This document shows positions 216 to 52,514 of a DNA stretch of 64,000 bases, in pieces. The translations under genes and the position numbers were made by a program. Source of the DNA: Macrostomum hystrix (Eukaryota > Animalia > Platyhelminthes); contig CATNEN010000002.1 in assembly GCA_950097015.1 (NCBI GenBank), forward strand, positions 4,836,001 to 4,900,000, in the 5' to 3' direction. The stretch's first letter is position 1. The number at the start of each line of letters is the position of its first letter. Under the pieces are notes generated by a model, which saw nothing but the letters and a program-made list of their open reading frames with translations, made no database searches and was not told the DNA's origin.

Positions 216-585
216 CCTCCAAATTGATAAAAAAAACAGTTTAATCAATCCAAAAGAGTCAACAATGATAGCCGATATGATTAAATGATGAAATTTCGTG
301 AAAATATTTGTTGCCACCAGACACCCGACGAGAATCGTTGAATATCTCGACGATGCCGATGTTTTTTGGTTCTGGAAGTTGTTTCATCGGATAGAGCGGA
401 AAACTTTAACGCGTGTTCTGGATTTTCATGAGGATTGGTTGAATATCTTGGGAGATGCAGAAAAATGAAAAATGTTAATTTGGTATTTTAAATCCCCTAT
501 ATTTCTACAGTTAATATACAGGTAGCGAAGTAATTAAAAAAGTTCCTTCTAAAAATAGCAACCACATTTCACTGCAACCTACCAG

Positions 586-1587
586 CATCGAATCCAGCGC
601 GGCCATCGTACGGCTCTGCTCTGAGGCCGGCCGTGGACCATGTCTCCGCTGGTCGTCTCTGTCGCTACCCGACCATCGCGCTGCTGCAGCCAGATCCAGT
701 CTCGGAATCGCACATTCCTAAAACTTTGCTTCAGGATCTCAAGCGGGATATTTCTCCCAACAGCTCGTCGCCATGTCACGTGGTTCATGCAGCCTCTCCT
801 GGTCGAGGCGGAGATGAGCTTCGTGTCAGCACTAGCTTCCTTGAGAAGCGGATGCTCAGAAGCCTCACCACTCTGCAAGGTCAACTGTTCATTACACTCA
901 AGTACCTGGTCAAGAAGGTGATTTGCCACAAAGACTTCTACAATGTGCAAGGTTTGAAGCCGTATCACGTGAAGACAATCACATTCCGAATGCTGGAGCA
1001 AACACCCGCTGACGAGTGGAAGCCGGACAATCTCGTCAGTCTCGTGAGGCGGTCGCTGGAGATGCTGCTTGGTTGTGTTGAGAGCGGCTGCACATCCGGC
1101 AATACGCATGGGCGGATAATGGAGCACTTTTTCCTGGCTGACGCGGCTCTTTACCTCAAAGGTATCAACCAGAAAGAGTCTGAGAAGATTCTGAGCAATA
1201 TTGCAAGCACATTGAGAAAAGTAATCGATAAGCTGCCTCAGCTGCTGCTCCAGTTTGTGCGCTATCTCAAGCCCTTAAGTGAGTCTGGCAGGTTCTACTT
1301 CCATCCGTTTCAAATCCTGCCAGATATCAGGCCATTGCCCGTGACAATGTCGGGCAGGCTCGAGTATCACGGCATCTACGGTGTAGCAAGGGAGTGCATA
1401 CTGCGACTCTCGCATAAAGACTGCAGCCTGCAATCTCAAGAGAGTCTCACGGAGTTGATCGCGAGACTGCCAGACTGCGCCTTCACGGCAAGAGAGGCTC
1501 TCAGAGCGCTGGCGTGTCTCAAGTTCGGCTACCGAGGGACAGCGGAGAAAATCTTGAGCCAGTGCAGGCGCCACTCAGTGAGCAGAG
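586..1587 (+). CDS. cGAS-like receptor (Mab-21/cGLR nucleotidyltransferase) paralog 1, internal exon; 5' exons lie outside the window
   Basis: Acceptor CCAG at 582-585 gives a phase-1 entry homologous to the paralog acceptor at 30614. Translation has PAVDHV (third catalytic Asp region), LRVSTSFLEKRML, KPYHVKTITFRMLE and MEHFFL, matching the cGAS/Mab-21 motifs WRLSFS.EK, SYH.KT and .NYF. Colinear with 30615-32074. Confidence 0.85.
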
Positions 1588-1591
1588 GTAT

Positions 1592-1973
1592 GGATAGTAA
1601 TAATAATAATAATAATAGTAATAATAATAATTGCAGCAGGGCTGCGGGCAATGGCACAACGCTTGGTGATACTAGACCCGCAGCCAGCGAGGAGGCAATT
1701 TAGCCATTTTCGCTGACTCCTGAGCACACCCGCACACAGATAGTGTACGCAGGAATACGCTCACACAGGTGTGTACATCTGCCCTGACTTTCTAATCGCC
1801 AGGCGGTGTACACTTTCACCGTTCCTTGGAAGTTAGCCCTATTATGGGCGAAAGCCTTGACAAGCCTTCTCGCTGCGACAGCGCCCTAATTTAATGTGAC
1901 CTCGTCGCGGAATCGAGCTCAGGGACGTTGGCGCGAGAGACAAACGCGTTAACCACTCTGCAATTCACCCCCT
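1592..1973 (-). mobile_element. tRNA-derived SINE (family A), antisense, filling intron 1588-1975 of cGLR1
   Basis: Minus strand begins AGGGGGTGAATTGCAGAGTGGTTAACG (A box) ... GAGCTCGATTCC (B box) and ends in a (TTA)n tail. Flanked by TSD AGGTAT at 1586-1591 and 1974-1979. Homologous to 15285-15646 and 22447-22624. Confidence 0.9.
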
Positions 1974-1975
1974 AG

Positions 1976-2421
1976 GTATTGATTGGTCGTTTGATAGATC
2001 GGCGACTGAGGCCACAGTGCAATACGTGTGGCAGCACCTGCAGAGCAGTGACAGCGCGTGGAAGTTCTGCTTTCAGTTCGGGACGCGACCGGAACTCCAA
2101 TTCGTAGCGGGACCCATCGCGAGCTGCTTTCCACTGTCAACACAGACTTACGAGGATCATTTCTACATGAACTTCGACGCACTCATGTGGGCGATGCGTC
2201 TGGAACTGCGAGGCGGCTGCGACCAGCAAAACGCGGAGGCGTGGATTCGAGGTCTGGCCACGAGAGAAGACGCCGACTATCAGGAGCTCCTCGTGGCGAT
2301 TTCCTACTGCTTCGATTTTGACTGCACGAAGGCGCTAATGGAAAAGCTGCACAGCCTCAATGGCAGTGTTCCTGATTGGCTGAAACAGGAGCTCAGAAAG
2401 AGGTGGCCAATCAAAAACTGA
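1976..2421 (+). CDS. cGLR paralog 1, terminal exon (C-terminal extension)
   Basis: Joining 1587 to 1976 restores [35 protein letters not shown], matching paralog [35 protein letters not shown]; stop TGA at 2419-2421. Confidence 0.85.
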
Positions 2422-22950: not shown

Positions 22951-23981
22951 CGATCATTTCGGGGCTTAGTTGGAGGTTTGCGAAGTAGTGACTTGCGGAG
23001 ATGCGCATTATTCTGTGCAACCAAAGCTAATTAAAAAATAGCTTAACCCCTGCCTTCTGCATGTCTGCTTGTTTGTGTTTGTGTTTGTGCGTTGGGCTCG
23101 GTGAGGCATTGTATGGGGGTGGGGCGGGTGTGCGCCAGCCATGCGTGCTCTGAGCGGCGAGGTTTCACCAGCCGTCTGCGCGCGTGGCTTGGTCCTCTCG
23201 TCCCTACCCTTCAGGCATCTAAGTCCTCCCTTGGTTTGGTCTGCTCTGTGCGTGTGCGGGCCTGGGGTGAGAGGCACTCCGGCTACCGCCCCCTTCCCCG
23301 CTTGGCTTGGTGCTGTGTGTGAGGTGCCAGGGTGTGTCCAGGGGTCCAGATGGCGGGATGGGCGACTCCCGCCTAGTTCGCCCGCCTGGGGGCATGCTGT
23401 TCCTGCGCTTGTGCGACAAGTGCCCTAGGCCCTCCTGCAATTAAGTATGTAAAAAATAATTCATTCAAGTACGAACTGATAGTTATTAAAACCTGACTGT
23501 GTGCCTGAGCCCTGAAAATAGGAATCTATACATTAAATAAGCCTGGCTTAAAATTGGACCGAATTCTCACCTGTTAACAGGCTATACAAAATTATAGAAA
23601 ATTCTCTCCTGTTAGAAGAATTTAATTACAGTACCAATTCCTCCATCAACATCTTTTACTTTTCTCATATTGATCAGAATCCTATTCTCAGAATTCTCCC
23701 ATGCTGAAACGAATTCTCACTATTTAGAAAGAATTCTGGCTTTATAGACAGAACTGAAATGTCGCAAGCAATAGCAGCAGCTAGCCAACAACAATGAGCA
23801 ACTCGGAGCAGAGAGGCATCTTGAAATGGCTTCCAATTGGCTGAGCTGAGTTATAAATACTTGGTTTTTATTCAGTGGAAAGCTTAAACAAACTTGGCTG
23901 CAATTGAAAATCTAAGCGCTTAACGCACCTTACAATTTTTTTCCCTTTCTAAATTTGCTGTTACGTGTCCTGCTTTTCCCG

Positions 23982-26900
23982 ATGAACTCGCTTAATCCTG
24001 AAGAGAAGCAGCCTGATTCAGCGTCACTCGCTGATGAAGAGCTGCTGGCTGCCATCAGAGACGATGACGTGGCCTCAGTAGATCGACTCATTGCCAGTGG
24101 CAACAGCGTCGATGCCCTCATTGCGTTTAAAGGCACGTTTTGGACACCAGCAATGCTTGCGTGCGAATTCGGAAGACAGGAAATCCTGATTAGGCTCATC
24201 AATGGCAGAGCGGATGTAGACAAGCAGAACTTAAGAGGAACCACAGCATTGTGGGTTGCATCCAAAAAAGGTTATCAGCTGCTAGTGAATTCGCTTATCA
24301 AATCACAAGCTGACATCAACATTCAACAATATCAGGGCGCATCACCTCTCCACATTGCCTCACGCAACGGCCATCATGAGGTAGCTCGCTTACTCATTCA
24401 AGCAGGAGCCGACGTCAATCTTCGAGAGAAAGCTAAAGGCGCATCACCTCTCTACATTGCCTCACAAATCGGCCATCATGAGGTGGCTCGCTTACTCATT
24501 CAAGCAGGAGCCGACGTCAATCTTCGAGAGAAAGCTAAAGGCGCATCACCTCTCTACATTGCCTCACAAATCGGCCATCATGAGGTGGCTCGCTCACTCA
24601 TTCAAGCTGGAGCCGACGTCAATCTTCAAGAGAAAGCTAAAGGCGCATCACCTCTCTTCATTGCCTCAAAAAACGGCCTTCATGAGGTAGCTCGCTCACT
24701 CATTCAAGCAGGAGCTGACGTCAATCTTCCAGATAAAGCTAATGGCTACTCACCTCTTCACATTGCCTCATACAACGGCCATCATGAGTTGGCTCGCTCA
24801 CTCATTCAAGCAGGAGCCGACGTCAATCTCCAAGATAAAGCTTATGGCTTCTCACCTCTTCTCATTGCGTCAAGTGGCGGCCATCAAGAGGTAGCTCGCT
24901 CACTCATTCAAGCAGGAGCCGACGTCAATCTTCAAGACAAAGCTAATGGCTACTCACCTCTCTACATTGCCTCACAACGCGGCCATCATGAGGTAGCTCG
25001 CTCACTCATTCAAGCAGGAGCCGACGTCAATCTTCAAGATAAAGCTAATGGCTACTCACCTCTCTACATTGCCTCACAACGCGGCCATCATGAGGTAGCT
25101 CGCTCACTCATTCAAGCAGGAGCCGACGTCAATCTTCAAGAAAAAGCTTTTGGCTCATCACCTCTATTCATGGCCTCATACAACGGCCATCATGAGTTGG
25201 CTCGCTCACTCATTCAAGCAGGAGCCGACGTCAATCTTCAAGATAAAGCTTATGGCTTCTCACCTCTTCTCATTGCGTCAATTTGCGGCCATCAAGAGGT
25301 AGCTCGCTCACTCATTCAAGCAGGAGCCGACGTCAATCTTCAAGATAAAGCTTATGGCTGCTCACCTCTCTACATTGCCTCAAAAATCGGCCATCATGAG
25401 GTGGCTCGCTTACTCATTCAAACAGGAGCCGACGTCAATCTTCCAGATAAAGCTAATGGCTACCCACCTCTCTTCATTGCCTCACAACACGGCCATCATG
25501 AGGTGGCTCGCTCACTTATTCAAGCAGGAGCCGACGTCAATCTTCAAGAGAAAGCTAATGACGCATCACCTCTTCTCATTGCCTCAGGTAACGGCCATCA
25601 AGAGGTAGCTCGCATACTCATTCAAGCAGGAGCCGACGTCAATCTTCAAGATAAAGTTAATGGCTGCTCACCTCTTCTCATTGCGTCAAGTGGCGGCCAT
25701 CAAGAGGTAGCTCGCTTACTCATTCAAGCAGGAGCCGACGTCAATCTTCAAGAAAATGCTTATGGCTGCTCACCTCTCTACATTGCCTCAAAAATCGGCC
25801 ATCATGAGTTGGCTCGCTTACTCATTCAAGCAGGAGCCGACGTCAATCTTCCAGATAAAGCTAATGGCTTCTCACCTCTTCACATTGCCTCACAACACGG
25901 CCATCATGAGTTGGCTCGCTCACTCATTCAAGCAGGAGCCGACGTCAATCTTCAAGATAAAGCTGATGGCAACTCACCTCTCTACATTGCCTCACAACGC
26001 GGCCATCATGAGGTAGCTCGCTCACTCATTCAAGCAGGAGCCGACGTCAATCTTCAAGATAAAGCTAATGGCTGCTCACCTCTTCACATTGCCTCACAAC
26101 GCGGCCATCATGAGGTGGCTCGCTCACTCATTCAAGCAGGAGCCGACGTCAATCTTCAAGATAAAGCTAATGGCTGCTCACCTCTTCACATTGCCTCACA
26201 TTGCGGCCATCAAGAGGTAGCTCGCTCACTCATTCAAGCAGGAGCCGACGTCAATCTTCAAGAGAAAACTTTTGGCTCATCACCTCTATTCATGGCCTCA
26301 TACAACGGCCATCATGAGTTGGCTCGCTCACTCATTCAAGCAGGAGCCGACGTCAATCTTCAAGATAAAGCTTATGGCTTCTCACCTCTTCTCATTGCGT
26401 CAATTTGCGGCCATCAAGAGGTAGCTCGCTCACTCATTCAAGCAGGAGCCGACGTCAATCTTCAAGATAAAGCTTATGGCTGCTCACCTCTCTACATTGC
26501 CTCACAACGCGGCCATCATAAGGTAGCTCGCTCACTTATTCAAGCAGGAGCCGACATCAATCTTCAAGATAAAGCTAATGGCTGCTCACCTCTTCACATT
26601 GCCTCACAACGCGGCCATCATGAGGTAGCTCGCTCACTCATTCAAGCAGGAGCCGACGTCAATCTTCAAGAGAAAACTTTTGGCTCATCACCTCTGTTCA
26701 TGGCCTCATACAACGGCCATCATGAGTTGGCTCGCTCACTCATTCAAGCAGGAGCCGACGTCAATCTTCAAGATAAAGCTTATGGCTTCTCACCTCTTCT
26801 CATTGCGTCAAGTTGTGGCCATCAAGAGGTAGCTCGCTCACTCATTCAAGCAGGAGCCGACGTCAATCTTCAAGATAAAGCTAATGGCTGCTCACCTCTC

Positions 26901-28663
26901 TACATTGCCTCACAACGCGGCCATCATAAGGTAGCTCGCTCACTTATTCAAGCAGGAGCCGACGTCAATCTTCAAGAGAAAACTTTTGGCTCATCACCTC
27001 TGTTCATGGCCTCATACAACGGCCATCATGAGTTGGCTCGCTCACTCATTCAAGCAGGAGCCGACGTCAATCTTCAAGATAAAGCTTATGGCTTCTCACC
27101 TCTTCTCATTGCGTCAAGTTGTGGCCATCAAGAGGTAGCTCGCTCACTCATTCAAGCAGGAGCCGACGTCAATCTTCAAGATAAAGCTTATGGCTACTCA
27201 CCTCTCTACATTGCCTCAAAAATCGGCCATCCTGAGGTGGCTCGCTTACTCATTCAAACAGGAGCCGACGTCAATCTTCAAGATAAAGCTAATGGCTACT
27301 CACCTCTCTACATTGCTTTAGGTTACGGCCATCAAGAGGTAGCTCGCATACTCATTCAAGCAGGAGCCGACGTCAATCTTCAAGATAAAGCTAATGGCAA
27401 CTCACCTCTCTACATTGCCTCACAACGCGGCCATCATAAGGTAGCTCGCTCACTTATTCAAGCAGGAGCCGACGTCAATCTTCAAGATAAAGCTAATGGC
27501 TACTCACCTCTTCACATTGCCTCACTTTTCGGACGTCATGAGGTGGCTCGCTCACTCATTCAAGCAGGAGCCGACGTCAATCTTCAAGAGAAAGCTTATG
27601 GCTTCTCACCTCTCTACATTGCTTTAGGTTACGGCCATCAAGAGGTAGCTCGCATACTCATTCAAGCAGGAGCCGACGTCAATCTTCAAGATAAAGCTAA
27701 TGGCCGCTTACCTCTTCACATTGCCTCACTTTTCGGACGTCATGAGGTAGCTCGCTCACTCATTCAAGCAGGAGCCGACGTCAATCTTCAAGAGAAAGCT
27801 AATGACGCATCACCTCTCCACATTGCCTCAGAAAATGGCTATCATGAGCTGGCTCGCTCACTCATTCAAGCAGGAGCCGACGTCAATCTTCAAGAGAAAG
27901 CTTATGGCTGCTCACCTCTTCACATTGCCTCACATTGCGGCCATCCTGAGGTAGCTCGCTCACTCATTCAAGCAGGAGCCGACGTCAATCTTCAAGAGAA
28001 AACTTTTGGCTCATCACCTCTATTCATGGCCTCATACAACGGCCATCATGAGTTGGCTCGCTCACTCATTCAAGCAGGAGCCGACGTCAATCTTCAAGCG
28101 AAAGCTAATGGCTTCTCACCTCTCTACATTGCCTCACATTGCGGCCATCAAGAGGTAGCTCGCTCACTCATTCAAGCAGGAGCCGACGTCAATCTTCAAG
28201 ATAAAGCTAATGGCTACTCACCTCTTCACATTGCCTCACATTGCGGCCATCAAGAGGTAGCTCGCTTACTCATTCAAGCAGGAGCCGACGTCAATCTTCA
28301 AGAGAAAGCTTATGGCTTCTCACCTCTTCACATTGCCTCACATTGCGGCCATCAAGAGGTAGCTCGCTCACTCATTCAAGCAGGAGCCGACGTCAATCTT
28401 CAAGATAAAGCTTATGGCTACTCACCTCTCTACATTGCCTCACATTGCGGCCATCAAGAGGTAGCTCGCTCACTCATTCAAGCAGGAGCCGACGTCAATC
28501 TTCAAGATAAAGCTAATGGCTACTCACCTCTCTACATTGCCTCACAACGCGGCCATCATGAGGTAGCTCGCTCACTCATTCAAGCAGGAGCCGACGGAGC
28601 CCTTGCAGCTCTAGATCTTCATGCCTTATTTGAGTTGGGCGATCGCCAGACATGCAGCAGAAG
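23982..28663 (+). CDS. ANK-cGLR exon 1: ~3-4 divergent ankyrin repeats plus 41 tandem 34-aa ankyrin repeats
   Basis: Uninterrupted ORF from ATG 23982; 102-nt period from 24408 to 28589 (41 units, consensus ADVNLQDKANGxSPLxIASxxGHHEVARSLIQAG); strong donor AAG|GTATGT at 28663/28664 (phase 2). Confidence 0.9.
24408..28589 (+). repeat. Coding tandem array, 41 x 102 nt (ankyrin repeats)
   Basis: Counted from the translated ORF; framework TCATTCAAGCAGGAGCCGACGTCAATCTTCAAGA is nearly invariant. Confidence 0.97.
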
Positions 28664-29559
28664 GTATGTCTGTACTTGCTATGCCCGGATAATTTTGATA
28701 AAAATAATGCCCTCATCGGGCTAGTTGTTCAGCCTACGTAGCACTTGCGTGGCGCATCTGAAGGCTGTGCACTGCTCTTCAGTCCCTGCTTCAGAACCCC
28801 CGACCTAGGCTGGAACCCCTAGTTGCCCCTACATTTATCTGCCCTTGCCTTTGGATTTTCTGCAGTCATCACCTTCTTACGCTGCACTCCAGTGCGTTGT
28901 CTGCCTTGTGCAGTCCGTGCTCGATCGCGTTCTCTCGATCTTCAACCTGCTTGTTTTAGAATATCAGTGTTCTTTCAATTCAGCGATTGAATGAGAAAGA
29001 CTTATGATAAGTACAAAATTGGCTTGCCCAAATCGTTTCTGATAGCTGGAAGTAAATCATAAATCATAGATTTGAATCAGCTGTGGTGCAATTCAATATT
29101 AGCATACGCCCATACAAGCAAAGGTGCACCTTCTTACTTTAGAACTCTGCCCCTGGAGGCACAATATGTTCATAAACGTCTCAAAAGTTTTTTCGCTTTC
29201 AAAAGTTTTCAGGACAAAATTTTGCTTTTAGAGATATGCTTACACACCTGGATACTTTTAAATATTGTTCACCGCTTCTAGAAAACGCTAATCTTTACTG
29301 CCTAAACTGGGCGAAAATTTACTGGGGCCACTCTGCGCATGGTCAATTTAAGGAAGGGAAATTTCTAAGAGTTATAAAACCGGTTTCACTCTGTAAGAAA
29401 TCTTAACAGAATAGTGAAATATGAAAAGTGAATTCTTTGCCAGAATGCTTCCCTAAATGTTCAAAAACAGAACAACATGCTGAGATAAATTTTCTCAGGC
29501 TCCTCAGAGCCTCCCAGCCTTACTCAAACTCAGCACTGCCGCCTCCCTTCACCCTTCAG

Positions 29560-29909
29560 CGTCGCACCCAGCGACGCAGAGCTGAGTCGGCAGCTGCACT
29601 CCAAGCTCTCTCAGTCAGGATTCGTGGACTCCAGAGCCGCCTTGCAGATCGCTGTGGCTGACGTCTTGCAGGATGTTCTCAGGAAGAGAATGAACTCTGA
29701 GAACTGGTTCGTTATGGGCAGCTTCTCTGAGGCTTGGGGCAACAGCCTGGTCTCTCTGGATGGAGGAACTGACATCGACTCTGACATCGATGTTATTCAG
29801 CTGATTCCAGGAAGGCCGATTCACCCGAGAGATGTGTGCGAGTGCGACCGAGTGGAGGCTGCTCAGACAGTGGAACTCAGCAATGGCCACATCCTGAGCT
29901 CCGGATTCG
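29560..29909 (+). CDS. ANK-cGLR exon 2: nucleotidyltransferase active-site exon
   Basis: Polypyrimidine acceptor GCCTCCCTTCACCCTTCAG (ends 29559, phase 2); encodes FVMGSFSEAWG...TDIDSDIDVIQL (hG[S]...DhD motif); donor G|GTGAGA at 29909/29910 (phase 1). Confidence 0.85.
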
Positions 29910-30614
29910 GTGAGAATTTCCTGCCAGAGACTGTCGGGATGGCCGGGACAAGAATTGAACATGTGTTTGGCTTAGTGAATCTTGTCTTTAAATGAAACAG
30001 CAATCGATAAAAAAAGTAACAAATTTTCAATCTAGACAGGCAATTCCAGGCAAAATGGAGAGTTGGAATTTAGTTTCTGATTTCGCTTCTTCTGCTAAGC
30101 AAGCAGAGGCTTAGCACCCTGTACTAAGTAAACCATGATGCCATAGGATACTTTCTCTGTTTCGTAGGTTCGCTATGATTTCACAGTCACATCATTGCAA
30201 CAACGGCTCATGTAAAATTGAAGGATTTGAAAGAAAGAAATAAAGATAAGAAGAAAGAAAATTGAAGTTTATACACACCAGTTGGCAAATTCATCATTGA
30301 CTAAATCCGGAAGTCAGTGCAAATTAGAGTTACCCATCACGCCCACACCTGCAACAAATCCTAATAAACCGAAGGTATACAAAGAATAAATTTGATTTAT
30401 ACTCTAAATGCTTTTGATCCTTACCTTTATAGTTAGCAAATCGTAGCACTATTTTTTCTGTTTCGATTTTTTGCACCTGTTTGCAGATATAGTAAAATAC
30501 CAAATAGTATTCAAAAATTAAAAAAATATTTTCAAAGATTTTCAAATGTTTTAAAAAATCTGATTTGTAAGCTAATGGCATTTTCTATATTTCTCGAATT
30601 TCCCATTTCTCCAG

Positions 30615-32074
30615 CCTCCAACCCAGCCATTACACAACCTGGATCCACCCTGAAACCGGCTGTGGACCTTGTCACCGCCCGCCGCCTCTGCCGCTACCCT
30701 CCCATCGCGCCGCTGCAGCCACCAAGAGTCTCCAAATCCAACATCCCCCAGTCCGTGCTGCAGTCGCTCGAGCGAGATATTAGCTCTCCCTCATCGCCCT
30801 GTCACGTGGTGCACGCAGCTCCTCCCGGAATGGGGGGCCAGCAGCTCCGAGTGAGCAGCAGCTTCCTGGAGAGGCGACTGCTGCGGAGTCTCAGCACTCT
30901 GCAAGGCCAGCTGTTCGTCACACTCAAGTGGCTGCTGAAGAAGAAAATCTCAAACGTCGGCTTCAAGTCCTATCACGCGAAGACCGTCACGTTCCGAATG
31001 CTGGAGGAGACACCGGCTGAGCAGTGGAAGCCGAAGAATCTCGTGAGTCTCACGAGACGCTCGCTGCAGATGCTGCTCGACGGTGTGGAGAGCGGCTTCA
31101 GATCAGACACACCTGACGGTCGGATCCTGGAGCACTTCTTCCTGAGCGATGCCGCTGTGTACCTGAAAGGCTTGAAGTCGCCCACATCAGCTGAGAGAGT
31201 GAGCGAAGCGTTGAATCGGGCAGCCGGCGCATTGAGAGACGCCATGGCTGAGCTGCCTCAGCTGCTGCTGCAGTTCGAGGACAGTCTGCGACCCGTCACC
31301 GACTCGGGCCGATTCCGATTCCACCCGTTCCTCATCCTGCCGTTTCTCAATGACCGACCCGTGTCAGAAGCCAAGACATGCGAGTTCCACGATATCTACG
31401 ACCTCGTGAGAGAGTCGGTGCTTTGTCTGTCCGATGGAGACCGCAGTCCGCAGTCCCGAGAAAGTCTCACAGAGCTGATCGACAAACTGCCAGACTGCGC
31501 CCGATCAGTGCGAGAGTCTCTCAGAGCGCTGGCGTGCCTGAAGTTCGGCGACCGACTTAGTGCAGCGAGAGTTGTGAGCGACTGCGGGCCGCTCAGTGCG
31601 AGCAGAGGCATCGATTGGGGAGCTGAGAGGTCGGCGAGTGAGGCCACTGCGGACTTTGTGTGGCAGCACCTGAGGAGCCGAGACTCCGCCTGGAAATTCT
31701 GCTTCGCGTTTGACGAGCGACCGAAGCTGCCGATTGAGCACAAAGTCTTTGTCGACTGCTTTCCGCTGCAGATGGAGAACAGCAACAAACACTTCTACCT
31801 GAACTTTGACGCCCTGCTGCGGGCTCTTCGCAATGAGTTGTCAGGAGCAGGAGACGAGAGCGATCAGGACTGGATCCGGGACGTGGCTCAGAGTAAGGAT
31901 GCGGACGAGCAGGAGCTGCTGGTGGCTGCGGCGATCTGCGAAGATCTGGAGCTGCTGCGGCTGCTGCGCAGAAGAATAAGGCAGCTGTGCCGGCTGCCGG
32001 GGTGGCTGCAGCAGAAGATTGAGAGGCTGAGCAGTCAAGGCGAAGATCGCCAAAACCAAATCGGATTGCGTTGA
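30615..32074 (+). CDS. ANK-cGLR exon 3: Mab-21/cGAS-like lobe plus C-terminal extension
   Basis: Acceptor TTTCTCCAG (phase 1); [39 protein letters not shown]; stop TGA at 32072-32074. Three-exon join is 6492 nt = 2163 aa plus stop. Confidence 0.9.
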
Positions 32075-32186: not shown

Positions 32187-32895
32187 GTTAATGGGGGGTT
32201 AATTGGAAGTGAGACTTTCAGTTAATGGCCAAGGCCACGAGCGGCGATTAGCCGCGAGTGGCAATTTGGCCATTGTTCGAAATGTCACTTCACGTTAATG
32301 ACATCTCTGTCATAGACAACTGCAGTTAATGACAAGTCTCTTACCTCCCTTTCGCACATAGACAAATCGATCAATGCAGCTAATTGGAAGTGAGACTTTC
32401 AGTTAATGGCCAAATTGCCACTCGCGGCTAATCGCCGCTCGTGGCCTTGGCCATTAACTGAAAGTCTCACTTCCAATTAACCCCCCATTAACTGAAAGTC
32501 TCACTTCCAATTAACCCCCCATTAACTGAAAGTCTCACTTCCAATTAACCCCCCATTAACTGAAAGTCTCACTTCCAATTAACCCCCCATTAACTGAAAG
32601 TCTCACTTCCAATTAACCCCCCATTAACTGAAAGTCTCACTTCCAATTAACCCCCCATTAACTGAAAGTCTCACTTCCAATTAACCCCCCATTAACTGAA
32701 AGTCTCACTTCCAATTAACCCCCCATTAACTGAAAGTCTCACTTCCAATTAACCCCCCATTAACTGAAAGTCTCACTTCCAATTAGCTGCATTGATCGAT
32801 TTGTCTATGTGCGAAAGGGAGGTAAGAGACTTGTCATTAACTGCAGTTGTCTATGACAGAGATGTCATTAACGTGAAGTGACATTTCGAACAATG
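32187..32895. repeat. Interleaved inverted repeats X-Y-X'-(34-nt)n-Y'
   Basis: X 32187-32274 is the reverse complement of 32405-32492; Y 32271-32409 is the reverse complement of 32757-32895; ~10 copies of ATTAACTGAAAGTCTCACTTCCAATTAACCCCCC at 32453-32785. Confidence 0.9.
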
Positions 32896-46019: not shown

Positions 46020-48345
46020 CACAAATCAACACAGATCCCAAACCACACTCACAACAACACAGATCCCATACCACACCCACAACAACACAGATCCCAAACC
46101 ACACCCACAACAACACATCCCATACCACACCCACAACAACACATCCCATACCACACCCACAACAACACAGATCCCATACCACACCCACAACAACACATCC
46201 CATACCACACCCACAACACAGATCCCAAACCACACCCACAACAACACAGATCACATACCACACCCACAACAACACAGATCCCATACCACACCCACAACAA
46301 CACAGATCCCATACCACACCCACAACAACACAGATCCCAAACCACACCCACAACAACACAGATCCCATACCACACCCATAACAACACAGATCCCAAACCA
46401 CACCCATAACAACACAGATCCCAAACCACACCCACAACAACACAGATCCCAAACCACACCCACAACAACACAGATCCCAAACCACACCCACAACAACACA
46501 GATTCCAAACCACACCCACAACAACACAGATCCCAAACCACACCCACAACAACACAGATCCCATACCACACCCACAACATCACAGATCCCAAACCACACC
46601 CACAACAACACAGATCCCATACCACACCCACAACAACACAGATCCCATACCACACCCACAACAACACAGATCCCAAACCACAACCACAACAACACAGATC
46701 CCAAACCACACCCACAACATCACAGATCCCAAACCACACCCACAACAACACAGATCCCATACCACACCCACAACAACACAGATCCCAAACCACACCCACA
46801 ACAACACAGATCCCAAACCACACCCACAACAACACAGATCCCATACCACACCCACAACATCACAGATCCCATACCACACCCACAACAACACAGATCCCAT
46901 ACCACACCCACAACAACACAGATCCCAAACCACACCCACAACAACACAGATCCCAAACCACACCCACAACAACACAGATCCCAAACCACACCCACAACAA
47001 CACAGATCCCAAACCACACCTACAACAACACAGATCCCATACCACACCCACAACAACACAGATCCCATACCACACCCACAACAACACAGATCCCATACCA
47101 CACTCACAACAACACAGATCCCATACCACACCCACAACAACACAGATCCCATACCACACCCACAACAACACAGATCCCATACCACACCCACAACAACACA
47201 GATCCCAAACCACACCCACAACAACACAGATCCCATACCACACCCACAACAACACAGATCCCATACCACACCCACAACAACACAGATCCCATACCACACC
47301 CACAACAACACAGATCCCATACCACACCCACAACAACACAGATCCCAAACCACACCCACAACAACACAGATCCCATACCACACCCACAACAACACAGATC
47401 CCAAACCACACCCATAACAACACAGATCCCATACCACACCCACAACAACACAGATCCCATACCACACCCACAACAACACAGATCCCATACCACACCCACA
47501 ACATCACAGATCCCATACCACACCCACAACAACACAGATCCCAAACTACACCCACAACAACACAGATCCCAAACCACACCCACAACAACACAGATCCCAT
47601 ACCACACCCACAACAACACAGATCACATACCACACACACAAAAACACAGATCCCAAACCACACCCACAACAACACAGATCCCAAACTACACCCACAACAA
47701 CACAGATCCCAAACCACACCCACAACAACACAGATCCCATACCACACCCACAACAACACAGATCCCAAACCACACCCACAACAACACAGATCCCATACCA
47801 CACCCACAACAACACAGATCCCATACCACACCCACAACAACACAGATCCCATACCACACCCACAACAACACAGATCACATACCACACCCACAACAACACA
47901 GATCCCAAACCACACCCACAACAACACAGATCCCATACCACACCCACAACAACACAGATCCCATACCACACCCACAACAACACAGATCCCATACCACACC
48001 CACAACAACACAGATCCCATACCACACCCACAACAACACAGATCCCATACCACACCCACAACAACACAGATCCCATATCACACACACAACATCACAGATC
48101 CCAAACCACACCCACAACAACACAGATCACATACCACACCCACAACAACACAGATCCCATACCACACCCACAACAACACAGATCCCAAACCACACCCACA
48201 ACAACACAGATCCCAAACCACACCCACAACAACACAGATCCCATACCACACTCACAACAACACAGATCCCATACCACACCCACAACAACACAGATCCCAT
48301 ACCACACCCATAACAACACAGATCCCAAACCACACCCACAATAAA
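46020..48345. repeat. 28-nt minisatellite (CACAGATCCCATACCACACCCACAACAA)n, ~80 copies
   Basis: Direct inspection; source of the many Cys/Val/Gly/Trp ORFs on the minus strand. Confidence 0.97.
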
Positions 48346-50319: not shown

Positions 50320-50920
50320 TCACGCCTGCCTTTTGCTGACAGTGCTGGAGCAGCAACCGTTTGAAAAGCTGCCACCACTGGAGCCATTGTCAGCAGCGGC
50401 AGCGGCAGTGGTGTCGCGGGCAGCAGCCACAGCGCTAGGCAGCCAGATCCGAACTGTGCAGTCATCACTAGCGGAAGCCAGCATGCCGTGAAGCCGTGGA
50501 TTCCAACTGACGCAGCTCACAACGCCACCGTGGCCGGAGAGTTTCTCGGGCAGCAGATGCTGCTGCTGCTGCTGCTGAGAGCTCCTGGCGCCTCGATGCC
50601 AGACGCACACTCGACCATCGTGGGATCCGCTGGCCACGAAGTCCTGGTTGAAGCCACCGAAGCAGGCGTGGAGCAGGAAGGTGCCGTGAGTGAAGCCATG
50701 CAGCCGGCGGTGGCAGAGCCGCAGGCGGAGGTCCCACAGGTGTACACCGGCTGAGGCGACGCACACGGCCAGCTGGGATTCGTCAGCGCTGATGCTCATG
50801 GACATGATGGGGCCCTCCTCGCGAAACAAAGTCTCATCCACCATGGAGTCGAAGCGGTAGCGCCTGACGCGGGAGAATGTGTCAGCGGCCAGAACTGCCG
50901 TGCCACCGTCTTCATCGCGT
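50320..50920 (-). CDS. WDR26: WDR26 exon 3 (WD40 repeats, stop)
   Basis: GVHLWDL...CFGGFNQDFVASGSHDGRVCVWHR...GHGGVVSCVSWNPRLHGMLASASDDCTVRIW matches the WDR26 C-terminus; total 584 aa. Confidence 0.9.
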
Positions 50921-51039
50921 CTGGAGATCAATGGAATGAAATGGGTCCTGTAACCTAGGATTGCTGCTGACATTGAATTAGTGCTATGGGCATTTGATGG
51001 ACTCACATCAAATAGTATGAGAAAGGAGAATGAAGGGAA

Positions 51040-51715
51040 ATGACCAATCAAAGGACAGGATGAAGGGTATTGACCAATCATAAGACAGGATGAAGGGTAA
51101 TGACCAATCATAAGACAGGATGAAGGGTAATGACCAATCATAAGACTGGATGAAGGGTATTGACCAATCATAAGACAGTATGAAGGGTAATGACCAATCA
51201 TAAGACAGGATGAAGGGTAATGACCAATTACAAGACAGGATTAAGGCTAATGACAAATCATAAGACAGAATGAAGGATAATGACCAATCAAAAGACAGGA
51301 TGAAGGGTAATGACCAATCATAAGACAGGATGAAGGGTAATGACAAATCATAAGACAGGATGAAGGGTATTGACCAATCATAAGACAGGATGAAGGGTAA
51401 TGACCAATCATAAGACTGGATGAAGGGTATTGACCAATCATAAGACAGTATGAAGGGTAATGACCAATCATAAGACAGAATGAAGGATAATGACCAATCA
51501 TAAGACAGGATTAAGGCTAATGACCAATCATAAGACAGGATGAAGGGTAATGACCAATCATAAGACAGGATGAAGGGTAATGACCAATTACAGGACAGGA
51601 TGAAGGGTAATGACCAATAACAAGACAGGATGAAAGGTAATGACCAATTACAAGACAGGATGAAGGGTAATGACCAATAACAAGACAGGATTAAGGATAA
51701 TGACCAATCATAAGG
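51040..51715. repeat. 30-nt minisatellite (GATGAAGGGTAATGACCAATCATAAGACAG)n filling WDR26 intron 2
   Basis: About 22 copies. Confidence 0.95.
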
Positions 51716-51824
51716 CGCGATGAAGAAAATCTTAAACTAGAAGACAGAGCAACAAGGGAATAGTAGAAATTTGATTAAAAAAAATAGCGGAAAAAATAAA
51801 CCAGGTAAAATAAATCACACGCAC

Positions 51825-52384
51825 CTGGTTGCCAGGGCAACCACTCGAATATAATCCCAAGCCTTCTCAAAGCCGAAGTCCACAGAGCACAGATAGAAGT
51901 GTCCCCGATTGCCGCCCACAACAAAATGGTTCGAATCCGGCAGCCAGGCAGCCGTGGTCAGCGAGTCCTCGTCTCTGTGCTTCAGCTTTTTGATGCAGTC
52001 GCCTGTGTCGGCGTCCCAGACAATCACCTCGGTGGCATCCTCGGCGGCGCAGGCGAGGAGTAGGCGACTGTCGGGTGACCAGGCCAGCCAGGCCACACCG
52101 CTGCGCTCCTCTGCGATCTTCAACGCCGGCAGCTGCTGCCGGACCCGCGGAGGTCCAACCGGAGGCGTTTCAACCTGCCACAGGTGGACAACGCAGTCCC
52201 TGCCACCGGTGGCAAGCTTGCTACCGTCTGGCGAGAATTGGCACACGTGAACCTCGTCCTGGTGAGAGTCGAGCACCTGACTGCACACTGAGGGCAAGGT
52301 GGCAGCTGAGGGACAGGTGTGATCTGCTAGCAATGTCAGCTGGTCAGGTGACAGGCTTGTGTTGTGATGCCGGCAACGGGCAAC
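51825..52384 (-). CDS. WDR26: WDR26 exon 2 (WD40 repeats)
   Basis: QVLDSHQDEVHVCQFSPDGSKLATGGRD, AWSPDSRLLLAC; acceptor ATTCAG, donor AG|GTGCGT. Confidence 0.88.
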
Positions 52385-52514
52385 CTGAATGAATAGGGTG
52401 GATGGCCATTGTACTTTAACTGCATTACATACTATTGGCGAGATCCCATTCATTTCTAATTAGACATATATTCACTCTACTATTACCTAGTAAGATCCTA
52501 ATGGTTTACAAAAA

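Follow-up and report, generated by a model that had tools for sequence, protein, structure and literature searches.

A probable single-gene fusion of a giant ankyrin-repeat array and a cGAS-like nucleotidyltransferase in the flatworm Macrostomum hystrix

A 64,000-nucleotide (nt) stretch of the Macrostomum hystrix genome (assembly GCA_950097015.1, contig CATNEN010000002.1, positions 4,836,001 to 4,900,000; hereafter the window, numbered from its first letter) contains, between 23982 and 32074 on the + strand, what is probably a single three-exon gene for a soluble intracellular protein, in which an ankyrin solenoid of ∼45 repeats is followed by a complete cGAS-like nucleotidyltransferase (NTase) and a helical C-terminal domain. 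The proposal rests on findings of the analysis itself, namely the reading frame, its splice sites, the joint of exons 2 and 3 in RNA, a cGAS fold, intact catalytic residues, membership of a family and the anatomy of the array.

Most animal cGAS-like receptors (cGLRs) are orphans with no known ligand, and the role of the ankyrin (ANK) domains appended to some of them is not known. With its identical framework and diversified groove, the gene lends itself to two questions: whether a repeat-domain sensor can take the place of nucleic acid on the enzyme in driving a cGLR, and whether the homogenise-and-diversify strategy seen in the repeats of fungal NOD-like receptors (NLRs) exists in animals as well. 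Macrostomum is a laboratory model in which RNA interference and transgenesis are in use, so the question is testable.

Gene model, enzyme core and family

A first-pass annotation of this DNA had proposed that three open reading frames (ORFs) join in frame through canonical sites. The + strand ORFs lie at 23955–28724 (1589 codons), 29624–29995 and 30575–32074, and the proposal was borne out to the letter at the junctions: the coding sequence 23982–28663 + 29560–29909 + 30615–32074 comes to 6492 nt, stays in frame with a single terminal stop and predicts a product of 2163 amino acids (aa) and 233 kDa, in which all the motifs quoted in that annotation, including EHFF, are present. Both introns follow the GT..AG consensus. 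Intron 1 is bordered by AAG/GTATGT at 28663/28664 and by CCCTTCAG/C at 29559/29560, and intron 2 by TCG/GTGAGA at 29909/29910 and TCTCCAG/CC at 30614/30615. On reading the sequence, 28663 appears to be the only sensible donor for exon 1, since the neighbouring GT sites give the wrong phase. The features are as follows; P0002 and P0009 are paralogues from Macrostomum lignano.

23982–24314, + strand: start codon, N-terminal cap and ∼2 divergent ankyrin repeats (aa 1–111), from the translation; homologous to the N-termini of P0002 and P0009
24315–28598, + strand: 42 in-register ankyrin units of 34 aa (102 nt), from Tandem Repeats Finder (TRF), Pfam Ank, column entropies, dN/dS, and the register of designed ankyrin repeat proteins (DARPins) and ankyrin-1/2
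28599–28663, + strand: short linker closing exon 1 in phase 2, with donor AAG/GTATGT, from the sequence; partly alignable to the P0002 linker
28664–29559, + strand: intron 1, 896 nt, GT..AG; its retention leads to an in-frame stop at 28722–28724, and P0002 is interrupted at the matching position in the same phase
29560–29909, + strand: exon 2, spine helix and NTase N-lobe, with the GS motif at 29717–29722 and the DID motif at 29783–29791, from the family alignment and RNA contigs
29910–30614, + strand: intron 2, 705 nt, GT..AG, phase 1, from the sequence and spliced contigs
30615–31273, + strand: first part of exon 3, third catalytic Asp (30665–30667, in KPAVDLV) and Mab-21 C-lobe, from Pfam Mab-21_C (E 1.6e-3), the family profile and the fold match
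31274–32074, + strand: second part of exon 3, family-specific helical C-terminal domain of 266 aa and stop codon, from the structure model and family conservation

No signal peptide or membrane segment was found in the protein, the N-terminus being hydrophilic and the highest 19-aa Kyte-Doolittle mean 1.19. A hidden linker exon was sought in intron 1 with six paralogue linkers as queries, which gave no significant match, and a comparison of the introns and flanks with the rest of the window for transposon copies yielded nothing informative. The intact 6492-nt frame led to the dismissal of a pseudogene. An NLR was likewise dismissed because no NACHT or NB-ARC NTPase domain is present, Pfam scans of all three exon products returning Ank-type and Mab-21_C matches only. 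For the array, the 4.7-kb open frame and the indel-free register rule out a chance origin.

Transcription was followed in four runs, two of RNA type (X3 and X4) and two metatranscriptomes, outdoor and wastewater (X1 and X2). Exons 2 and 3 are covered by RNA contigs from X3, X4 and both metatranscriptomes, and the introns are nearly empty. The joint between them is seen in contigs of X2, X3 and X4, in which exon 2 breaks off at 29909 and is followed directly by CCTCCAACCCAGCC, the letters of window 30615–30628; the supporting contigs are mostly 90%–99% alike to the window and thus come from alleles or paralogues. The same architecture is found in the gene for P0002 (M. lignano contig NIVC01001685.1), which encodes ANK and core in 1117 aa. 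Its exon 1 (ANK and linker) ends in phase 2, its exon 3 begins after phase 1, its exon 2 measures 359 nt as against 350 nt in the window, and its introns are 218 and 170 nt long. The spliced window product is colinear with P0002 over the two junctions, down to the Ala codon that intron 2 divides, and at least six M. lignano gene models hold ANK and core in one protein. The paralogue architecture and its intron phases argue strongly for the exon 1–exon 2 junction, and exons 1–3 very likely form a single gene.

As modelled, the core is a cGAS/Mab-21 fold nucleotidyltransferase with an intact active site. The catalytic residues are G1614-S1615, D1636-I-D1638 and D1695 (in KPAVDLV), and the triad is complete. 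In a 46-sequence family alignment (A1) the two residues of the GS motif and the two Asp residues of DxD hardly vary, the third Asp is present in 41 of 45 rows, and the catalytic columns overall are conserved in 41–45 of the 46. The profile of this alignment matches Sp-cGLR1 (E 1.1e-19), cGAS (1.5e-15), MAB21L1 (5.5e-10) and MB21D2 (6.8e-10); the window piece alone reaches cGAS at E 0.025. A phmmer chain arrives at bona fide Mab-21 + Mab-21_C proteins. An AlphaFold2 (AF2) model of the core was built from residues 508–1117 of P0002, to which window exons 2 and 3 are 62% and 68% identical, both being included in the alignment. It has a predicted local distance difference test score (pLDDT) of 92.4 and a predicted template modelling score (pTM) of 0.92. 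In Foldseek its top 50 matches were all cGAS (E about 1e-8, probability 1.0), and VIA-align gave Z scores of 15.8 for MAB21L1, 15.2 for MB21D2, 14.3 for cGAS, 14.0 for Sp-cGLR1 and 13.8 for Cv-cGLR1, the match spanning model residues 10–345, the whole catalytic domain. The profile, Foldseek, VIA-align and the motifs thus agree with the earlier assignment of a cGAS-like (cGLR/Mab-21) NTase having an intact GS...DID motif and a third acidic residue, and the structure search that had been suggested as a check for the Mab-21/NTase fold did find it, in the model of the P0002 core.

The C-terminal domain of 266 aa was modelled from the window sequence itself (AF2 model m4cce7ccb5958, pLDDT 89.4) and is helical with a small sheet. 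It has no significant match in the PDB (best E 0.18), and in the ESM Atlas only a TPR/PPR-like helical resemblance with a template modelling (TM) score below 0.5. The domain is kept in 26 family members.

To place the gene in a family, the exon 3 product was searched against 1.84 billion representative sequences. The search returned 145 matches, 55 of them below 1e-30, and all the relative clusters that were looked up are Macrostomum lignano proteins, many of which measure 1100–1400 aa and have Pfam ankyrin repeats on the N-terminal side of the match. The weakest matches are ordinary invertebrate Mab-21 + Mab-21_C (+ TPR) proteins. The best identity of the exon 3 product to any M. lignano protein is 67%–72%, and nothing above 67% was found among proteins of 267–849 aa, the lengths covered by that particular search. 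A query with region 1–115, aimed at an orthologue with the same N-terminus, recovered only generic ankyrin proteins, and no orthologue of the window length was found in these protein database searches.

Several further relatives were encountered. A second cGLR paralogue lies at window 585–2382 on the same (+) strand, ∼22 kb upstream (Mab-21_C E 1.5e-6); its identity to the P0002 core is 49%–55%, it is broken from 1595 to 1975, and some of it, on the 5′ side, lies outside the window. P0077 (M. lignano PAA93319.1, 2111 aa) has, in its gene model, ANK on either side of a Mab-21-like core (about 1005–1543) and a caspase domain at the C-terminus (residues 1896–2107; Peptidase_C14, E 2.8e-27); the model represents a cGLR-caspase fusion or else was merged from separate genes. 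On window 29563–31750, X1 and X2 transcripts are mostly 90%–95% alike, which indicates that close relatives of the gene family occur in environmental samples; one X2 contig is spliced at the 29909 donor. A 41%-identical partial relative, P0191 (347 aa, on a 1065-nt contig), is assigned to a Kangiellaceae bacterial metagenome-assembled genome and is probably eukaryotic (flatworm-like) contamination of the metagenome bin.

The ankyrin array and its variable positions

The ∼45 ankyrin repeats of the first-pass annotation were recovered as 44 Pfam Ank stretches, or as 42 in-register units beside the N-terminal cap and ∼2 divergent repeats. TRF describes a period of 102 nt with 41.7 copies, 88% matches and 0% indels over 24342–28596. 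The 42 units comprise 35 distinct sequences as protein and 38 as DNA. Two-unit cassettes of 236–243 nt, repeated exactly, reappear 3 and 11 units apart, and no exact repeat inside the array exceeds 243 nt; part of the growth of the array was thus by cassette duplication.

Within the unit, numbered from NLQDKANG, 15 of the 34 columns are invariant. Variation is concentrated in columns 7, 9, 13, 17, 18 and 21, whose entropies range from 1.2 to 2.9 bits and whose six-residue signatures take 31 different forms among the 42 units. At the amino acid level the units are 83.8% identical to the consensus (93.8% when these six columns are left out) and, in pairwise comparison, 78% identical to one another. 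The 252 hypervariable residues are dominated by Tyr (47), His (46), Asn (31), Gln (28), Phe (23) and Cys (19), with 11 Arg, 7 Lys, one Asp and one Glu. When the register was fixed by alignment to DARPin and ankyrin-1/2 structures, columns 7, 9, 17 and 18 fell on positions that differ between DARPin repeats (x3, x5, x13 and x14). In the ANK-N5C library, positions 3, 5 and 13, on the concave surface, were randomised (PMC4308713). The column entropies, dN/dS and the DARPin register therefore bear out the earlier description of an array homogenised in its framework and hypervariable at its groove, like the high internal conservation (HIC) repeats of fungal NLRs.

Other arrays of the family differ from this one. 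Over G8–V34, identity is 0.78 within the window array as against 0.51–0.61 to other arrays, and in most paralogues no more than 13 repeats are detected, which resemble repeats of other arrays as much as they resemble one another. P0009 (M. lignano A0A1I8G2N0, 975 aa) carries ∼10 nearly identical units (91% identity), in which the groove residues stay constant (Y, Q, N) and only the loop varies, a case of homogenisation without diversification. The window array has by far the most repeats and, P0009 aside, the highest internal identity among the examined sequences. Tandem expansion recurs in the family; expansion together with groove diversification is found only in the window gene among the sequences examined.

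Nonsynonymous (dN) and synonymous (dS) divergence between units was estimated by the Nei-Gojobori method. The framework has a dS of 0.082 and a dN of 0.035, and the six hypervariable codons have a dN of 0.62, ∼8 times the framework dS. Where two units disagree in every one of the six hypervariable residues, on average only 5.8 of the 84 framework nucleotides differ between them. When changes were counted in a SLAC-like way on a tree built with FastTree from the 38 distinct units, nonsynonymous change per site relative to the global synonymous rate was 5.4, 5.0, 3.6, 3.4, 2.9 and 2.8 for columns 9, 17, 7, 26, 18 and 13, respectively, and 1.4 for column 21; pooled by hand from the per-column table, the ratio is ∼3.5 for the six hypervariable columns versus ∼0.6 for the framework. 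The excess of nonsynonymous change at groove columns, more than the size of the array, is the feature that needs explanation, and tests of this kind can be distorted by recombination.

A mechanism can be sketched from these features and from related proteins. The array would have grown recently through unequal recombination of 102-nt units and two-unit cassettes, while selection would keep or create diversity at groove positions. The variable loop and inner-helix positions, rich in Tyr, His, Asn, Gln and Phe, differ from unit to unit and, taken with ankyrin structural biology, suggest that the groove may be a ligand-binding or regulatory module. Long ankyrin solenoids are superhelical, and structural work on ankyrin-B has shown that the inner groove binds extended peptides; by analogy, the groove here would probably hold an extended ligand. 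As in characterised cGLRs, the enzyme may normally be inactive and, once ligand is bound, make a cyclic or linear oligonucleotide signal. A bolder proposal, unlikely on present evidence, is that the array could be a germline-encoded, rapidly diversifying recognition surface along whose groove a variable non-self ligand (a pathogen protein, or a long polymer scanned one unit at a time) would bind and so switch on the cGAS-like enzyme. If true, this would be a cGLR that senses something other than nucleic acid via an appended, evolvable repeat sensor, and an animal counterpart of the fungal HIC-repeat receptors. The first-pass proposal of an immune sensor, part of a diversifying receptor system for protein ligands and not nucleic acid, goes further than these features carry and describes a candidate role. 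If the array is a neutral expansion, the gene is just another member of a catalogued family.

Alternative explanations

Several observations weigh against the proposed gene and against a function for its array. The window piece alone scores 18.9 bits with Pfam Mab-21_C, below the gathering threshold of 24.1, and the structure model of the core is that of the 62%–68% identical paralogue, not of the window protein itself. No read or contig in the four runs joins exon 1 to exon 2 across 28663–29560, and an acceptor at ∼29560–29563 is used in all four runs with upstream letters that differ from the end of window exon 1. The per-site tests are weak, only columns 9 and 26 reaching p about 0.04, and recombination confounds dN/dS-type tests on intragenic repeats, inflating all counts. 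The genome is prone to tandem repeats, with dense minisatellites at 32–64 kb of the window, just downstream of the gene; tandem arrays are readily made in this genome, so expansion of the array alone is not evidence of function. The main text of the preprint by Li et al. (2023; PMC9980059) mentions none of the M. lignano family members that were in its in vitro screen, so that no activity or ligand is reported there for the family.

The giant array may be a by-product of such a genome, a doubtful account overall and still a serious one. Unequal crossing-over would have inflated an ordinary ANK-cGLR of 11–13 repeats, the variable columns would be no more than the surface positions under least constraint, and the protein would act as its shorter paralogues do, the diversity of repeats having no role. 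The minisatellites that fill 32–64 kb of the window, the expansion without diversification in P0009, the exact two-unit duplications of 236–243 nt and the weakness of the per-site tests all fit this explanation. Neutral drift, however, predicts a dN about equal to dS, and the dN found (0.62 versus a framework dS of 0.08) is ∼8 times as high. Moreover, there are 31 different signatures among 42 units, the variable columns are specifically groove positions, and the frame has stayed open over 4.7 kb with 0% indels.

It is rather improbable that the protein senses a polyanion such as nucleic acid instead of protein, a long polymer being read by many modular units through a groove rich in aromatic and basic residues and through a basic face of the NTase. 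The NTase part is indeed basic (isoelectric point, pI, 8.67) and the hypervariable residues are almost without Asp and Glu; cGLRs responsive to dsDNA or dsRNA have a higher predicted pI (PMC9980059). The whole ankyrin array, in contrast, has a pI of 6.4, long natural ankyrin solenoids are known mainly as peptide or protein binders, and the closest PDB sequences are ankyrin-1/2 and DARPins. The in vitro screen table of Li et al. lists five M. lignano constructs (numbers 89–93), and the screen was supplemented with poly I:C and dsDNA; the M. lignano relatives were not reported to be active in it. Many cGLRs were inactive in vitro, probably for want of the right ligand (PMC9980059). PAA45980.1, from this screen, belongs to the cluster of P0037, which matches window exon 3 at E 5e-51.

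The exons might instead yield two products, an ankyrin-only protein ending at the stop at 28722–28724 (through retention of intron 1 or a polyA site) and a separately started cGLR from exons 2 and 3; this has a low probability. RNA across both junctions had been suggested as a check, and contigs support 29909–30615, the 28663–29560 junction being the one that no read or contig links. Within intron 1, a depth of ∼6x was observed in X3 and X4 at 28724–28847, just past the in-frame stop, where the neighbouring exons have 60–115x, and a single exact contig of 152 nt maps to 29395–29546, near the acceptor; this signal may represent unspliced RNA, intron retention or DNA carry-over. Both observations count in favour of two products, as does a window linker shorter than that of P0002. 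On the other hand, exon 2 has no upstream in-frame ATG, and a start at its first Met would lose the spine helix. A spliced-leader start at the acceptor was considered and rejected on our own reading of the sequence, in which an AUG-ending leader joined at 29560 is out of frame and meets a stop. The loose ends at the acceptor are not a leader but linker exons of paralogues, translating to ...KMQNRA/APSD. The paralogue shares the intron positions and phases, and the M. lignano models with ANK and core in one protein likewise favour a single gene.

That the length of the array is an assembly artefact, with repeats over-expanded or mis-joined, is very improbable: repeats of 88% identity are hard to assemble and no orthologue of such length was found in protein databases, but the 42 units comprise 38 different DNA sequences, no internal repeat is exact over more than 243 nt, and frame and register are intact throughout.

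Elsewhere in the window, minisatellites at 32451–63953 have periods of 13–49 nt and up to 94 copies, often at 90%–100% identity. They yield long spurious ORFs, such as a Cys/Gly/Val repeat at 46860–48059 (− strand) with false Pfam matches to Defensin_1 and HetE-N. A WD40 β-propeller gene of at least two exons (WD40 E 5e-15 and 3e-15) lies at 50320–52453 (− strand) and is interrupted by a 30-nt minisatellite at 51030–51725.

Comparison with known systems

The ANK-cGLR class as such is not new. ANK- and TPR-fused cGLRs are minority architectures, of which Stylophora pistillata ANK-cGLRs are shown by Li et al. (2023; PMC9980059). The domain table of that study includes six M. lignano proteins with Ank_2, namely PAA67649.1, PAA58690.1, PAA68676.1, PAA86972.1, PAA45980.1 and PAA68216.1. 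The window protein resembles these in having ANK N-terminal to a cGAS-like core, in belonging to the same family and in sharing the GSF.E.WGNS...D.D motifs. It differs in its 42 homogenised units with a hypervariable groove, compared with at most 13 detected repeats in the examined M. lignano relatives. For no ANK-cGLR has a ligand, product or activity been reported, and the literature on ANK-cGLR function offered nothing beyond Li et al. (2023); a literature search for STING in Macrostomum found nothing relevant.

With cGAS, Sp-cGLR1, Cv-cGLR1, MB21D2 and MAB21L1, the modelled family core shares the bilobal fold over the catalytic domain (Z 13.8–15.8) and the triad of GS, [DE]x[DE] and D. Sequence identity is 14%–20%, and the loop between GS and DxD is longer in the window family. 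Compared with the solved cGAS/Mab-21 structures, the window protein adds the helical C-terminal domain of 266 aa and an ankyrin N-terminus of 1560 aa.

The array has counterparts among both designed and natural ankyrin proteins. As in the DARPin and ANK-N5C libraries, a constant consensus framework is combined with diversity at loop and helix-1 positions, and the variable DARPin positions 3, 5, 13 and 14 have their equivalents in window columns 7, 9, 17 and 18. Unlike DARPins, the window array is natural, has 42 units instead of 2–5, also varies at the His of TPLH (column 13), and has a loop longer by one residue in its 34-residue unit. In the PDB, the array is closest in sequence to ankyrin-R/B (24 repeats) and NOMPC (29 repeats), entries 4rlv, 7tw3 and 5vkq, in which, in contrast, the repeats are diverged and conserved between species, and no enzyme is fused to them.

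A parallel to the pattern of variation lies in the fungal NLRs (HET-E/HET-D with WD40 repeats and the Podospora ANK and TPR NLRs). HIC, which by definition requires an identity of 85% or more across 100 aa or more, is found in 10%–22% of fungal NLR repeats versus 0.8% of metazoan ANK/WD/TPR repeats, and the fungal NLRs show positive selection on the concave ANK surface together with repeat-number polymorphism (Dyrka et al., 2014; PMC4986451). A homogenised framework, variation on the concave surface and reshuffling of units or cassettes are common to both systems. By the same measure the window array is just under the HIC threshold, with an amino acid identity of 83.8% over 1428 aa, and its DNA matches reach 88%. 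It differs from the fungal genes in having no NACHT or NB-ARC domain, in its cGLR output and in its animal host. No paper was found in the literature that describes a homogenised hypervariable repeat array on a cGLR. The architecture and the flatworm family of the window gene are already known, and what looks new is only the giant, homogenised and hypervariable array.

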